NCBI GenBank assembly: GCA_025558095.1
Contig: JAIVFI010000002.1
Span: forward strand, 310,001 to 374,000
DNA: 64,000 bases
Source: Hyaloraphidium curvatum SAG 235-1
Taxonomy: Eukaryota > Fungi > Monoblepharomycota
Direction: 5' to 3'
The translations under genes and the position numbers were made by a program. Numbering within the stretch: the stretch's first letter is position 1; each line of letters opens with the position of its first letter. The notes below the pieces were generated by a model that saw only the letters and a program-made list of their open reading frames with translations, made no database searches and had not been told where the DNA came from. Shown in pieces: positions 3,996 through 50,527 of the stretch.

Positions 3996-4650
3996 GAGAG
4001 CGTGGAGCTGCGCTGAATTGAACAGGGGTGTGATGAATCAGCGGTCGGCGATCCGCCTAGCCCCCGCGAACAGGTGATCAGAAGCGCTGAGGTAGTCACA
4101 TCCTTCCTTCTATGTCCTTCTATCCTATTGCAGTGTCTTCTTTCCCCCGCAACTGCTCCAATCCCTCCGTGCCATACACGGCGCATTCGTGCCCACGATT
4201 CGGGAACTGGGTCCGCTTGTCGGTTCTCGGAGGCGACGAGCATCCGTCCCCGATGCCCTTCCGCGAACTGAGAACTGCCTGAAGTAAGGATCGAAGGCGC
4301 TCAGCAGGTCCTTCGCTCGCGGTCGGTCCGAAATCGGATTGATCACGCCGGTGTCAGGCGGGCTCGCGGCGGCCAAGGCGGGTGCACGACGACAAAGATC
4401 CGGCGTCACTCTCCGCGGGCAAAACTCTGTAATGGAGATGAGAATTAGAAGCGACACGGGTGCTCAGCAGGTAGCTGGGACAGAAGCCAGCCGCTTATTG
4501 AGCTCAGAACTGCCATTGGGCAACTACACTTCGAAGCAAACATCCACGCCGTTCGAATACCGTCTACATCAGCACCGGCCTTGGCACCAGACAGAGCTTC
4601 CCCGGTCGACCGAACCCGGCTCGCGGGCCGACCATCCCTCCTCCGAACAC

Positions 4651-5318
4651 TCAGAGCTGGAGGGCCTCCGTCGCGGCGTGGTCGGCGACGACGAGTGTGG
4701 GGATCGAGGAGTGCTTCAGGACGTGCTCCGCGTTGGACGGGTGCGAGAAGATGCTGCGGCGGAGGGCGGAGGTCAGGTTGATCCGGTGATCACGGAGCCG
4801 CAAAGGTACCCACCCCTTCTTCTCATCGTATCCGACAATCAGGGCGTCTACGCCGAGGCTAGGAGCCGACTCGGCAATGAACTCGCCGGGGTTGGTGTGG
4901 CTGGTGGTCTTGACGGTGATTTCCACCTTTTTCGGGGCGAACTCCTGGGCGGCGGGGGCGGGCGGGCGCGGAGCCGTTGGCCATCGTGGGGGTGCCGTAC
5001 CGGGAACGTCGAGCCCACCTGCGCCGACTTGACCGTCTTCTTGAACTTGCGCAGGGCGGCCGACTGGATCTTGGCATCCTCCTCCTCCACGCTAAACCCG
5101 ACAAAGCCGGGCGCCGCGCCCTCGACCTCGGTGGGGTCGTTCGTGCAGATGAGCACGAAGAGGGTGTCACCGTCCTTCAGGACGAACTTGAAGGCGTTGT
5201 AGAGGGCGGCGTGTGCGGCCTTGCTGCCGTCGAAGCCGAAGCAGTCTGCGGGGCCGTCCCGTCAGCTCCGGGCCGCAGGGGCGGCAGCGGGGCCGTCGGT
5301 CAACGCACACTTCGTCAT
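4651..5318 (-). CDS. Universal stress protein (USP) family, 4 exons
   Basis: Splicing short GT-AG introns gives MTKYCFGFDGSKAAHAALYNAFKFVLKDGDTLFVL...GEFIAESAPSLGVDALIVG...SNAEHVLKHSSIPTLVV, which carries the USP N- and C-terminal motifs. Confidence 0.85.
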
Positions 5319-44312: not shown

Positions 44313-45686
44313 GCGAAATGGGCGAGAAAGAAGGGCGAGAAGGCGAGCGGAACGGTTCGGGGCGAAGAAGGCAAAACCCCTCTAAGCGCCGCCAACTACA
44401 AACTTGTCCCGTCAAACTTCAGAGTGCACGCAAAGAAAGCTTCGCGCTTCGCGCACAAAGAGGCCCCCTCCTTCACAGCGATCCGAGTCCCCGCCGAGGT
44501 GACCTACCGTACCGTGTTTCCAGAGGGTGGGGGTGCCCAAGCCGTCGAGCGTCACGAGCGCCTCGTGGTTGGCGAGACACTCGGTGCACCCCGTCGACGG
44601 AGAATCAATTCTCACCTTTGATTGAGAGGTCGTTGGAGGTTGCCGCGTCCGGTACGCCGGTCGAATTGGCCGAGGTGAAGCGGAGGCGGGCGGTTCGGTC
44701 GGGTGAGCGATCAACGTCTACGGGGAGCACCACAAGGGTCAGTCGACGGGGTGCCCTTGTGTCCGCGGCTTGAACAGGCAAGGCAGGAGGAGCGCAAGAG
44801 CGTGGGCGTTGTTTGGATTCGGCCGAACTAACAGCCATCACGATCGCAGGACGCTGACCACACAGCAACACCATCTACGTCAGGAAGACGATAGAGGCAG
44901 CGAGTTACGTACAGGATCATGATCAGGTCAAGGGCTATTAGAAGCGTAGGGAGGGAACGGCTCCACCGCATGCCCAGCCCGTCGATGGCCGCTTGGCAAA
45001 CGATGTATGAGACAGAGAAGAGAATAGAAGAGGTTATTAGCAAGCAGAGTACATGGATCGAGCGGATAACTAGGGCTCGAGATAACAGTTGATGAGGATA
45101 GCGAGAAGAGCTCGGGGACCGTGCCCAAATACAAAACCGACTACCGAAACGCGACGGTTCTGCTCTTCTGCTCTTCAGGTTGTAAAGAGGAGCTAGCCAT
45201 CCAGGCGTACAGAACGCGTCAAGCGGATTAACTGATGACTGATCACAGAGGCAGACCTCGATGGAGAGGATCGGCCAGAATGAGAAGGCGCAGTGCGACA
45301 ATGGACGCTGGATGCTACGAGCAAAGGCGGCTTGCTTCCAGGCCGATTGACAGCCCGAATATGCAACTGCGAAAGTACCCTTGTCGATCTTTCACTGCGA
45401 AGCAGCTATATAGAGGTGTTTTCAAAACAACTGGGACTCAAGTTCTATATCACTACCTAAAGCGAATACCCTTCACGTCTCTATCTCCACCACAGGCTAA
45501 ACAACAACTACCAAATTGCCGAGCTGGAAGCGCACGTCGATCGTCAGCGTCGTCAGCCCGGTGGTCATGGGGAAGGCGGTTCCGGAATTCTGGCCGATGA
45601 AGTCGATGATCAGAGGCTTGATCCTCAGGTACCGAAAGTGCATCAGAATGGGTATTGCGTCGATATTTTGAACCGTCCTGGTCGAG

Positions 45687-46301
45687 CTATGAAGTCAGTA
45701 GTAGAGGTCTCGATCGATGATTGCTTACGCACTGCCATAGGGCGGGTCCGTTGAAGACGTTCTGGCAGAAGACCTTGATGACCGCCTGTGCAGGTGGAAA
45801 CCCGGGCGTGCCTTGATGTCCAGGTATGAGCAGTATGGCAAGGATGTGGGGCGCCAGTCCGTTCATGATGGCATTGCCAAGCGCCCGGAACTCGCTGGTG
45901 ACCATGTTGGATGTATCACCGTTGGCGATCTGGAAGTAACGTCCGATGGATCCCGATTGCATTCCATGGTTCATCCCCATGTTGATCGCATTCATTTTCT
46001 TAACTGCCGGACCGACGGGCTGCGCCATCAGGATGTTTCCATGGAGCACCCTATTCATTGCGTGCAACGGGAACCAGGGAGGCATTGGCAGCCACCAAAA
46101 AGGGTTGTATGCTGGATTGAAGACCGCCAGAGAAGGTATGAGGGCCCACTGCAAGGGGCCGAAGACGCCAAAGTTTTGAAGAAAGTTGTGCACAGTCCCG
46201 TGAACGGTGGGATCGTAGACCAGGGCGCCCCAACGCACCCGAATGAAGTGGTCTATGGAAAGAAAATCCCGAGGACCGGCCAATGCCAGGGGAAAAGCCA
46301 T
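45687..46301 (-). CDS. Orphan ORF divergent from Fanzor
   Basis: 204-aa ATG ORF in lower-GC DNA, rich in N/M/P/F/W, unlike the GC-shadow ORFs. Confidence 0.45.
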   Translation of the reverse strand: MAFPLALAGPRDFLSIDHFIRVRWGALVYDPTVHGTVHNFLQNFGVFGPLQWALIPSLAVFNPAYNPFWWLPMPPWFPLHAMNRVLHGNILMAQPVGPAVKKMNAINMGMNHGMQSGSIGRYFQIANGDTSNMVTSEFRALGNAIMNGLAPHILAILLIPGHQGTPGFPPAQAVIKVFCQNVFNGPALWQCVSNHRSRPLLLTS

Positions 46302-46795
46302 GTGCCGGCCTCAAGAAACCGGGGTTGCAGAGGATTGACGGGATTCGCGCGGGGATGATCCGTGTTCGAGCCGGGTGAGCCGAACCCCGGTCAGCAGCAA
46401 CCTCATTCACACAATTCCTGCAGTTCGTTGGTGAGCTCGACTCGGGATTGCCTCCGACGTAGTCGCTGACCTTCTTTCTTTCAGACGTCGGTAGTTTTGC
46501 GCCCCGCTTCGCTCTCCGCCGGCATGGCATTCGGGTGCCGAGTCCGAGTCCGCCTCGCCGGCCGCAAGGCCATCTACTGCACCAGCCGGTTCTAGGTGGG
46601 CCGCAAGTACACGGCGCGCTAAGTGCGCGATTCTGACCTCGCACTCGTTCCTTCTACACCTCCTCCAGGGCGCTGGTGACCAGAGCCGCCATTGCCTCGA
46701 CCTCGACCCCTGCCCAAGTCACCGAATCGAGGTCCGTTCCCTCGACCGTCGACGTGTATCGGTCGAGCTCTAACATTGTTTGCAACAGCAGTGAC

Positions 46796-49700
46796 ATGGG
46801 GTCGAAACGAGGTCGAACATCGGACAAGGGGTCGGACAGCGACGAGCCCGGCGAAGGGTCTTCGGCACACCCACCTGCTCCCCGGAAGCGCGCCAACCAA
46901 ACCGGCGAGTCCGAGGTCGTCGATGCTGCAGCTCAGCTTCCCGTGGCCGTGGCCGTGCCGCCCAACTCCGAGTCCGACGACACGGAGCTCGCATCGTCGC
47001 TGGTGGCCGCCGTGTCGCAGAATGACACCGAGTCGGATGACTCCCGGCCCAAGGAGGCGATTCCCCAGAAGCGGCCCCGCAAGGACGGCGACAAGGGCAA
47101 GGAGCAGGCCGAACCCGTCCCCTCGTCTCCGAAAGGCCCCGAGCCCAAGAAGGCGAAGAAGAAGGGCTACGATGCCGCCGCCGCCGCTGCCCTGGCTGCC
47201 CTGGCGCCCGAACATTCTGCCCACCTCGAGCAGGCCAACGTGCTCACCGGTTGCCCCGCCCTGCTTTGCGGAAACACTGATCATTGGGATGCCGGTCACG
47301 GCGACGGGAGCGGCTGCCAGTTGTTTCCCTGCGGGAGCCTCTACCACAACACCAAGGAACATCTGAAGCGGCCCGATCCCCGCATGCCTTTCATGTGCCC
47401 GCACTGCGACCCGCTCAACACGCTCGACCACGACGAAGGTTTCCACTCGGTCTGCGGCACGTGTGGCGAGCGTGACCATGGCGACATCGCCCACGCGCAC
47501 CCTTGCGAGTGTGTACCGGGAGGATCTGGGCGTCGCGTTCAAAGGAGGAACTGTGGGAGATGGTCGCAAATGGCTTCCTGTCCGAGAACGTGCTGTACTC
47601 GTGGTTCGCCCTGATCTCGTACGAGGACCACGTGCTCGAGCACAAGCATACCTTCGTTTCCGTGGAGGAGCCCAACGGTTGCCGGCCTTTCCTCGTTCAC
47701 TGCGGCTCGCTGGGCCACACGCGCGCGGCGCACGGCGGGGTAGAGCCTCTGTACTGTTCGCAGTGCGGATCGTTTGAGCACCGGGCTAAGGAGCACGTGC
47801 ACTACTTGTCTGCGTGCCACACGAGCGCCAACGGCTGCGGACAAAGGGGTCACTCGAAGGTTACCGCCGGGGCCTGCGTGTTCAACATCAACGATCTGAA
47901 GAAGCTCACGCCCAAGGAGGCGCTGGACGAGCTCATGGGCCCGCAGTCTGCCCAGAGGACCGTTGTTATGGCGTTCCAAAAGTTCTTGAGGTATGGGGAC
48001 CGGACGGCGCGGGAACCCGCGAGCCCAGAGGAGGAACTAGCTGCCACGCTCTACGAGGTCATCGAGGATGCCATCGGGCGGTTCACGAAGCTTTCGTTCG
48101 AGATGTCTCTGTTCATGGACCTCTTCTTCAAGTACGTGCGCGACTTGCGGCTACTGGGAGGGGACCTTCGGTACCCTCACCTGGACATGAGCCTCGGCCT
48201 GAACGCCTTCTTCGCCGTGGCGGCGCCACTCGACGGCGACGAAGACCACGCCGATACTCTGGTGCCGCTTCTGAACACGTTCCGCGACACGGAATGGCTG
48301 GGCTGCGTCAAACGAGCTGCTCGTCATGGTTACAAGCGGACCTCACGGATTGGCCTCGGCCAGATCATGCGGACCGCTTCGCAAGGCTACGTGACGGCTG
48401 CCATGAACTCGGTGAAGGAAAACCTGCACGATCGGGTGCGCGCGTGGACGATCTGCAGGATTCGCATCCGGCTGCACAAGCACGGTCGTTTTGGCCCCCA
48501 GCAACCAAACCAGGGCCGTACGCTCACCAAGGGTGAAACCACGGCCATCGCGACCCACTTTGTCAACAGCCTGAAGTTCTGGGATCCGAGGGAGCACCCC
48601 GCCAACACGAACCGACCCTTCACGCTGCCTAACAACGAGCTCTACGACAAGGTCACGACCGATCCGCTGCTCCTGGAGATCTGCCGCGACGTCTACACCG
48701 AACTGCGCGACGACCTGCTCAAGGGTCTCTACCTCAACGCCTACTGGGTAGCGTACCACTGGCAGAGGTTCTTCGACGTCCTGTTCCGCATCCAGCGGGA
48801 GCACGAGGATCTGCGCAAGAAGCTGGTGCAGTGGACGGAGAACTTGAGCGAGAGCGAGAGGAAGTTCGCTCTCCGCAACTTTCCCTACAATCACAAGCTC
48901 GTGAAGCCCTTCAACGTCCTCCCGCGCTTCTCGACCGAAGCCAAGCACATCCTCATCGACCGCATCGCTCTTCACCAGCTCCTCCAGGTGGCGCAGCGGC
49001 GGCTCGGCCAGGAGCCCACCTCGCTGGCCGACTATCTCGCCGCGGAAGCCGAGGATCCGAAGCACTGGTGGCGTATGTTCTTCCGGCCGGAGAAGGTCAA
49101 CACCGGCGGCGCCGAGAATCCATCGAGGCACTTCGACTACTCCTTCTCCACCGATGCCGTGAAGGCCTCGATCACGGTTCGCGTGCGGAAGCCGTCGGAG
49201 GAGCAGCCCGGCACGTCGTTCTCCGACATCAAGATCCCCGGCATGTCCGTTGCCGGGCTCGACCCCGGCAGCACAGCCATCCTCACGGTTTCGACGGGCC
49301 TCTCGACGCCGGGGGACGACAAGCACCATGGCCACAGCAAAGCCGTCAGCGTCTCCGCGGGCGAGTACTACCACCTCGCCCGGTACAAGAACAACACGTG
49401 GAAAGCAAACCAGCGCAAGAAGCGGCACCCGTCCATCCTTGAGATCGAGCGCGACACGCCCGTGGCCAAGGCCTCCACCGTCGCGGACACCAAGCTGTAC
49501 ATCCACCACTGTCTCAAGCACCTCTCCACGATCGTCGGCTTCTACGGGACAAAGGTCCACCGGCGGTCTCGGTTCGACCGGTACATCGGCAAGCACACCG
49601 CGCAGGAAGCCGTTGCCGAGAAGGTCATCAAGGGCTGCGGCGTCGAAGCGGAGCGCCTTATACTTGCGTTCGGCAAGGCCAGGTTCCGTCACAACATGCG

Positions 49701-50105
49701 CGGCGGCGTAACGACTCCAGGGTCGGCACTGGCGTGGCTGAAGCGCATCCTGCGCCGCCGCGGCGTCACGGTCACCGAGGACGTGGAGGAAGACATGACG
49801 TCGCAGATCTGCGCGGCGTGCTGGGAAAAGGTCGGCAAACAACACCCGAAGAACGGGCACTACCAGATCAAGGATTGCAGAAATCCGGATTGTATGATCA
49901 AGTGCTGGAATCGGTTCGTTGCCTTGGGTTCTCGTCACGCAGCTCCTGACACTTCGGCCGCAGGGACGTCATGGCTGCCACCAACATCCGCACCATTGCC
50001 TTGTCGGAGATCCTCCACGGAGGCAGGCCTCCCGTGTTCTACTCGACGCGGAGGGCCAACTTCGAGGGACGCGATCCGGCGAGCGCGGGTGTCATCGTCA
50101 ACTAG
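46796..50105 (+). CDS. Fz1: Fanzor1 (eukaryotic TnpB/OMEGA RNA-guided endonuclease) with zinc-knuckle-rich N-terminus
   Basis: FNVLP..HILID..L, FSTDAV, RuvC-I GLDPG (D at 49261), LAFG, rearranged RuvC-II ExxTSQIC (E at 49789), CAAC..CRNPDC. Splicing intron 49914-49963 gives RuvC-III WNRDVMAATNI. Frame change at about 47506; internal ATG at 47560. Confidence 0.92.
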
Positions 50106-50410
50106 GGTCTTTTGGCCCTCCAACGACTCCTGCGTGTGTGACGATCCCGCTCAACGGTCAACTCTTGCGATCTTGAGTTCGCTCTCGAAAGCAAGGGTCG
50201 TGGCCGATCCGATCCCGACTGAGCTATGCAATGATGTTTTGATCGGGCGGGGCATCTATCCGCGGGCTCGGTCCGGGCGATCAGTGATACGGAGAAGACC
50301 CCGGCGGGTGGGAGCAGGAACCAAAACAATGGAGGTAGGGTTCATTGCTCCGGAGTCGGCGTAACCAATCGCCGTAGTACGAGCAGGATGCCGGGAAGTA
50401 TTGTGGTTGG
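50104..50410 (+). ncRNA. Candidate omegaRNA region of the Fanzor locus (boundaries unknown)
   Basis: Lies directly 3' of the Fanzor stop. Stems: AGGGTC/GGCCCT, AACTC/GAGTT, nested TGCTC..CGGCG/CGCCG..GAGCA, and GGCATC/GATGCC. Confidence 0.45.
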
Positions 50411-50527
50411 CTTAGTTGGTTTCTTTGAGGCTCCCGTTCATTCTGTAAACGGTACTAGTAAAAGCCGATGGTGTACACAATACCAATAATCGACCGGGAA
50501 CCGTTCTATCCTCACCCGGCACCCGGC

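Follow-up and report, generated by a model that had tools for sequence, protein, structure and literature searches.

A Fanzor1 transposon family in Hyaloraphidium curvatum with a probable short intron inside the RuvC-III motif of its gene

Known from the literature to be widespread in fungi, Fanzor1 proteins are eukaryotic RNA-guided RuvC endonucleases of the TnpB type, of which the closest described relative to the protein considered here is SpuFz1 of Spizellomyces punctatus. Its metal-binding residues are D383, E541 and D606 (Saito et al., PMC10432273), and its element, SPu-1, is about 2.1 kb long, has 33-bp inverted repeats and putative TA duplications, lacks a transposase and contains a single open reading frame (ORF; PMC3627910). 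Bao and Jurka (2013) described a protein signature, D-X(125,275)-[TS]-[TS]-X-X-[C4 zinc finger]-X(5,50)-RD (PMC3627910). The canonical RuvC-II Glu, which most TnpBs retain, is replaced in Fanzors by Gly or Pro, and an alternative conserved Glu lies about 45 residues downstream; intron densities of Fanzor genes reach those of host genes (PMC10530073). Here we analyse a Fanzor1 gene, and the transposable element that carries it, in a 64,000-nt stretch of the genome of Hyaloraphidium curvatum SAG 235-1 (the window; C2:310001-374000, contig JAIVFI010000002.1). We take this organism to be an early-diverging fungus and a member of the Monoblepharidomycetes.

By comparing the window gene with its copies in the 31.9-Mb H. 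curvatum assembly, with a paralogue in the same genome and with homologues from elsewhere—assisted by profile searches and structure prediction—we consider it decidedly probable that the window holds one copy of a Fanzor1 transposon family, that the family's gene is interrupted by a 50-nt intron, and that the window copy is frameshifted. According to this explanation, the gene in the two intact copies (on contigs C31 and C1) would start at the equivalent of ATG 46796, and one exon would run through an N-terminal extension and the core. A single GT-AG intron of 50 nt would then separate the R of the RuvC-III 'RD' motif from its D, with the remaining 46 codons behind it. Splicing would join CWNR to DVMAATNI and so complete the catalytic set (the DPG Asp, a Gly, the ExxTS Glu and the RD Asp). 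If the spliced protein works as SpuFz1 does, it would bind an omega RNA, itself derived from a conserved 3' stretch, and would cut guide-matching DNA beside a target-adjacent motif (TAM).

The intron within RuvC-III

The raw ORF (47503..50364), which reads DCRNPDCMIKCWNRFVALGS, runs through the 50-nt stretch as CWNRFVALGS. The sequence-only reading from which this work started had proposed that removing positions 49914-49963, with their GTTCGT, CTGAC and CAG, restores WNR/DVMAATNI and a downstream stop, and each of these features is present where it had placed them (Table 1). GTTCGT occupies 49914-49919, CTGAC, whose A stands 14 nt upstream of the AG and is the candidate branch point, lies at 49946-49950, and the final CAG runs up to 49963. 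The 50 nt are not divisible by three; the junction reads TGC TGG AAT CG / intron / G GAC GTC ATG GCT GCC ACC AAC ATC, and the frame from 49964 continues as DVMAATNIRT... to the stop. Fungal introns typically begin with GT and end with AG, carry a CTRAY branch site and are short. The ends of this stretch, its CTRAY-type branch close to the 3' end and its length all agree with that pattern.

Relatives of the gene show what the joined motif looks like. Contig C14 carries a single-copy paralogue whose Fanzor protein shares 41% identity with that of the window and is uninterrupted across the junction (CWNRDVMAATNIRT; wider context DCKNPNCLTKCWNRDVMAATNIRT), as is WNRDV(M/N)AA in the homologues P0003, P0007, P0010 and P0011. 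Exon 2 of the window aligns to residues 823-844 of P0003, immediately past the point at which exon 1 ends. Removal of the 50 nt restores both frame and homology, and the intron-less relatives are colinear across the junction.

Variation among the copies follows the same division. In the six copies compared, 11 of the 50 intron sites are variable (22%), compared with 8.9% of the four-fold sites of exon 1 and 2.1% of sites in exon 2. The invariant parts of the intron include GTTCGTTG, CCTGAC and GCAG, and all 11 variable sites lie elsewhere in its body. The exon 2 frame, the RuvC-III motif and the stop codon are kept in all six copies that extend through exon 2. The arrangement is not one of chance: it is kept in seven genome copies, and the motif stands joined and unbroken in the paralogue and in distant homologues. 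We conclude that the 50-nt stretch is very probably a spliceosomal intron, as judged from these sequence comparisons.

Two observations concern the history of this intron. In the copy on C31 (intron at L014:8107-8156), 9 of the 50 intron positions are unlike those of the other copies, with flanking exons that differ by less than 2%; most of these variants recur in a degenerate copy, C2c (L019), a pattern suggestive of gene conversion between sub-lineages or of a mosaic origin. The C14 paralogue has a different intron, of 59 nt (GTGAGC..CTAAT..ACAG, L016:8079-8137), eleven codons upstream, at a site that is unbroken in the window family. This difference in intron position between two paralogues is an example of intron gain or loss in a transposon gene. 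We found no published description of an intron inside the 'RD' of RuvC-III.

Fanzor1 identity and the native reading frame

Membership of the window protein in Fanzor1 is well supported by sequence profiles and by a predicted fold, in agreement with the initial assignment. A two-sequence profile, built from the window core and the C14 paralogue, recovered 594 relatives among 1.84 billion representatives, with family members at 1e-30 to 1e-54. A comparison with SpuFz1 by profile and by structure had been suggested as a check and was run. Nearly the full length of SpuFz1 (8GKH) is matched by a 50-member profile that includes the window sequence (E=1.4e-62), followed by GtFz1 (E=2.4e-52) and PpFz1 (E=5e-43). 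Fanzor2, TnpB and Cas12f are matched only over the last 50-70 positions, corresponding to the zinc ribbon and RuvC-III, at 1e-15 to 1e-3 (Fanzor2 L79, 6.6e-15; TnpB, about 2e-3). The Pfam family PF07282 is above its cut-off in nine of ten contiguous homologues tested.

The predicted structures give the same ranking. The AlphaFold model of window exon 1 has a predicted local distance difference test score (pLDDT) of 82.9 and a predicted template modelling score (pTM) of 0.82, and its folded core is confident from about residue 115. The top seven Foldseek matches in the PDB are SpuFz1, GtFz1 and PpFz1, at E values of 6.6e-18 to 4.7e-16. SpuFz1 is the best of these (E 6.6e-18, target-normalised TM 0.67-0.69), and the next matches, Cas12m and Cas12f, follow at 1e-4. 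As a proxy for the complete RuvC domain we modelled the contiguous homologue P0003 (43% identical), the two window exons being handled separately; its model (pLDDT 82.1) again has SpuFz1 as best match, at 3e-21.

The catalytic residues fall where a Fanzor1 would have them. When positions along the profile alignment are shifted by 394 to allow for the maltose-binding protein fusion in 8GKH, the profile's Asp (DPG), Glu (DExxTS) and Asp (NRD) align with D383, E541 and D606 of SpuFz1. The GLDPG Asp, the ExxTS Glu and the zinc ribbon reported in the earlier reading are present, in invariant or nearly invariant columns, and the column of the RuvC-III Asp is likewise nearly invariant. The rearranged RuvC-II of Fanzor1 is seen in Gly705 and in E744, which stands 39 residues past it. 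The signature of Bao and Jurka can be followed from D568 across 178 residues to T747-S748-Q-I-C751..C754..C773..C778, and then over six residues to R/D; it is found only with the intron removed, because the intron splits the 'RD'. As had been claimed, on the evidence of these alignments the rearranged D-E-D triad is completed by removal of the intron.

One part of the initial reading did not survive comparison with the other copies. It had placed the start codon at ATG 47560, from which the spliced product would be 831 codons long. The arithmetic is correct (2,354 nt of exon 1 plus 139 nt of exon 2 without the stop), but this Met is internal, being residue 258 of the native protein, and the six other copies read through it from the equivalent of ATG 46796. 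All six have CGCCCTC between positions 47508 and 47509 of the window, and with these seven bases the frame is continuous from that upstream ATG (MGSKRGR...), so that the native protein has about 1,088 aa in the C31 copy and 1,080 aa in that of C1. In the window copy, the frame from ATG 46796 meets its first stop at codon 272, and the 7-bp deletion separates the N-terminal 237 codons, with their stretches resembling nuclear localization signals (NLS-like) and their zinc knuckles, from the core.

Across the copies, pN/pS (the ratio of nonsynonymous to synonymous polymorphism) is about 0.25 in exon 1 and 0.2-0.7 in the N-terminal extension (46796-47508). These ratios show purifying selection on the extension and, for the whole family, past selection for a working protein. 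Of its seven copies only C31 and C1 are intact; C2b, C34, C7 and C2c are broken otherwise than the window copy. The latter is most likely defective, and could at best, by starting at the internal Met, yield an 831-aa protein that has lost its N-terminal part. It is thus the wrong copy to clone for enzyme tests; the intact ones are on contigs C31 and C1. A 36-nt "intron" (GTGTGT..CAAAG) might have bridged the frameshift at 47509, but we discarded it: a stretch of this length is too small for an intron, it lacks a branch site, and every other copy has it as in-frame coding sequence.

The extension consists of a disordered NLS-like stretch and about seven knuckles of the form C-x(2-6)-C-G-x3-H-x4-H, and is conserved in three lineages: the window family (window 46796-47900), the C14 paralogue (L016:5316-6080) and the environmental contig L020 (422-1700). 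AlphaFold confidence for it is low (pLDDT <50).

The transposon family and its other sequences

The genome contains seven copies of the element, the window copy included, that are 91-98% identical. In C31, C2b, C34, C1 and C7 the Fanzor gene has 97-98% identity, and the degenerate C2c has about 91%. The limits of the element (Table 1) are the points at which homology among the copies begins and ends, and TA stands outside both ends in every copy with a preserved end. The two termini, one compared with the reverse complement of the other, match at 19 of 30 positions in C31, C2b and C34 (a score reached by 2 of 2,000 shuffles) and at 15 of 30 in the window copy. With its multiple copies, defined ends, imperfect terminal repeats and TA flanks, the gene is carried by a eukaryotic transposable element, and the window stretch is one copy of a DNA transposon family of about 5 kb. 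A genome search with the termini recovered four left ends and six right ends, all of the same family; it found no autonomous partner sharing these termini genome-wide, and the terminal sequences occur nowhere outside the family.

Some features of the copies deserve separate mention. All four preserved left flanks (window 45409-45412 and its equivalents in L014, L018 and L017) have A-TA outside the inverted repeat, which may be a lead on target or TAM preference by comparison with SpuFz1, whose CA plus TA gives a CATA TAM. In the copy on C1 (L013, near 5409) homology ends about 18 nt short of the element's right end, and a piece of right end that matches turns up about 5 kb beyond that point (C1:1439284-1439300), in what looks like a nested insertion into the right end. 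C1 and C7 (L013 and L015) form a sub-family: they lack the canonical left end, and their disordered N-terminal stretch, equivalent to window 46842-47147, is about 20% divergent.

Table 1. Features of the element and its Fanzor1 gene in the window
Feature	Position	Strand	Details
Whole repeat element	45413..50455	+	about 5,043 bp; TA flanks at 45411-45412 and 50456-50457
Left imperfect terminal inverted repeat	45413..45442	+	compared with reverse complement of right end
Orphan ORF, 204 aa	45687..46301	-	divergent from Fanzor gene, inside element
Presumed promoter	46310..46795	.	most variable of the element's long parts, between the divergent genes; 11.7% of sites variable, 6 copies
Native Fanzor ORF start	46796..47508	+	ATG 46796, disordered NLS-like stretch, first C-x(2-6)-C-G-x3-H-x4-H knuckles; continuous with core in C31, C1
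Site of 7-bp deletion	47508..47509	+	alignment of 7 copies; CGCCCTC present in the 6 others
Exon 1 from internal ATG	47560..49913	+	WED/REC/RuvC-I/RuvC-II/zinc-ribbon core; last two bases begin Arg codon
RuvC-I Asp D568 (counted from Met 47560)	49261..49263	+	in VAGLDPG; invariant column; SpuFz1 D383 column
Gly705 at canonical RuvC-II Glu position	49672..49674	+	AFGKA; invariant Gly in 50 family members; aligned to SpuFz1 VVMGDW
Putative alternative catalytic Glu E744	49789..49791	+	in E-D-M-T-S; nearly invariant column; SpuFz1 E541 column
C4 zinc ribbon (TNB)	49810..49893	+	C751, C754, C773, C778; nearly invariant Cys columns
Probable phase-2 spliceosomal intron, 50 nt	49914..49963	+	GTTCGT, CTGAC, CAG; splits RuvC-III 'RD'
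Exon 2	49964..50105	+	last Arg-codon base, RuvC-III Asp 49965-49967, DVMAATNI, 46 codons; stop 50103-50105
Constrained 3' non-coding stretch, candidate omega-RNA scaffold	50106..50360	+	from copy alignment; RNA role by SpuFz1 analogy
Right imperfect terminal inverted repeat	50426..50455	+	copy-end comparison, shuffle test

Downstream of the stop codon, 255 nt of non-coding sequence are constrained, with 2.7% variable sites against 8.9% at four-fold sites (Fisher p=0.0018). By analogy with SpuFz1, this stretch is a candidate omega-RNA scaffold. It has no alignable similarity to the 3' region of the C14 paralogue. Within it, a block of 131 nt (50134-50264) is identical in five copies.

The element also contains a second, divergent ORF, separated from the Fanzor gene by what is presumed to be the promoter region. 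This orphan ORF is apparently a genuine coding sequence under purifying selection, judging from its pairwise pN/pS of 0.0-0.31 (overlapping ORFs have values of at least 1) and from its 20 variable sites, of which 14 are third codon positions (binomial p=0.0009). The ORF is confined to copies of the window element family; we found no relatives in Pfam, in the atlas or in the search for outside homologues, nor does it resemble the divergent ORFs carried by the C14 element and by L020. The C14 element (L016:3042-8585) is itself TA-flanked and 5.5 kb long, with 30-nt inverted repeats that are 93% complementary. Its upstream minus-strand ORFs, at L016:3276-4100 and 4375-5070, are unrelated to the orphan ORF and have no Pfam match.

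Elsewhere in the genome PF07282 (TNB) is above its cut-off at three further loci, C2:397554-397694(-), C5:336026-336172(-) and C2:426655-426792(-), one of them inside a 691-aa open frame; other Fanzor- or TnpB-like families are therefore present.

Weighing the explanations, and comparison with known systems

Several results weigh against the explanation preferred here. Splicing at 49914-49963 is something we infer from the sequence, and the closest database proteins, the Joint Genome Institute (JGI) gene models P0001 and P0002 (H. curvatum 'hypothetical proteins'), read through the 50-nt stretch. The link from the window protein to the solved Fanzor1 structures is, at the level of sequence, a transitive one by way of the family profile: phmmer of exon 1 against the PDB returned nothing relevant, and the two-sequence H. 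curvatum profile had no match there. For PF07282 the cut-off is 26.3 bits, and exon 1 alone reaches only 13.1; its match is confined to profile positions 7-46 of 60, because the intron cuts the domain. In the 3' stretch there is no significant fold (z-score -1.28), no covariation among copies that are too alike to reveal it, and no Rfam match. Finally, the 45413-50455 element encodes no transposase.

If the 50 nt were a fixed insertion that is never spliced, the read-through of the JGI models would be correct, the frame being open to 50364, and every copy would be a dead nuclease without RuvC-III and with a 150-aa read-through tail. This is very unlikely: the exact GT..AG ends and the CTGAC branch 14 nt from the AG are invariant in a stretch whose body is 22% variable, and exon 2, which would then be out of frame, keeps its RuvC-III motif and stop in six copies and is more conserved than four-fold sites. 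A regulated intron, whose retention would switch nuclease activity on or off, is the least credible alternative. Retention would meet no early stop, and a protein lacking RuvC-III could still bind RNA and DNA, but open frames are common in GC-rich sequence, the intron is indistinguishable from an ordinary short fungal intron, and the C14 paralogue has none at this position, so that there is no conserved switch. The earlier suggestion that nuclease activity would depend on splicing is correct in the sense in which it holds for any intron-containing gene; nothing points to regulation.

A further alternative accepts the intron and takes the window copy to be a working gene, with a start at ATG 47560 and an active 831-aa nuclease once spliced. 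The frame is indeed open from this codon through exon 2 and includes all parts that can be aligned with SpuFz1. We nevertheless consider it improbable. In all six other copies this Met is internal, the part that would be lost holds the NLS-like stretches, and purifying selection acts on the extension, which is also conserved in both the C14 paralogue and L020. A scanning eukaryotic ribosome uses an upstream ATG first, and here it would translate the 272-codon frame from ATG 46796. A Fanzor1 family with an ordinary intron and a frameshifted copy in the window is the explanation we retain.

These findings place a well-supported Fanzor1 family in an early-diverging fungus and leave the known Fanzor mechanism unchanged. 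They also bear on annotation: public gene models that read through the intron lose the catalytic Asp, and surveys that rely on predicted proteins will count too few Fanzors, or score them wrongly, wherever the short RuvC-III/TNB region is split by an intron. The literature searched, including the supplements of Saito et al. (2023), contained no pairing of Hyaloraphidium with Fanzor.

Among described systems, SpuFz1 and its element (8GKH; PMC10432273) come closest: SpuFz1 ranks first in both the profile and the fold comparison and has the same catalytic columns. Like the window element, SPu-1 is multi-copy, has inverted repeats of about 30 nt and TA flanks, lacks a transposase of its own, and has non-coding sequence from its stop codon to its right end. 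The proteins differ in sequence (about 15% identity) and in length (633 aa for SpuFz1 and about 1,088 aa for H. curvatum), and only the latter has an N-terminal extension, of about 370 aa, with its disordered NLS-like stretch and about seven CCHH-type knuckles; at 5 kb, with an orphan ORF and an intron, its element also contrasts with the 2.1 kb and single ORF of SPu-1. GtFz1 (Guillardia theta, 9CER) and PpFz1 (Parasitella parasitica, 9CF0) share the Fanzor1 fold (Foldseek 1e-16 to 3e-16), but they are structurally less similar than SpuFz1, with other hosts and other insertions. ISDra2 TnpB, Cas12f and Fanzor2 (APMV L79) have the RuvC fold, zinc ribbon and RD motif in common with the window protein; their sequence match is confined to the last 50-70 residues and their fold match is far weaker. 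CrFNuc (Chlamydomonas reinhardtii Fanzor1c; PMC10530073) resembles the window family in having spliceosomal introns and an NLS-like sequence, but it belongs to another subfamily and is carried by a Helitron2 transposon.

Introns and NLS-like sequences in Fanzor genes have thus been published already (PMC10530073), and a catalytic residue behind an intron is possible in any intron-containing gene. Only two features, the long N-terminus with its knuckles and the accompanying orphan gene, might mark a variant. There is some, rather slender, chance that the window family, the C14 paralogue and L020 make up a distinct Fanzor1 sub-lineage, characterized by a conserved N-terminus of about 370 aa with some seven CCHH-type knuckles, by 5-kb, TA-flanked elements with a selected orphan gene transcribed divergently and by the lack of a transposase, in which the knuckles, the orphan protein or both would serve mobility or RNA handling in a way absent from the minimal SpuFz1.

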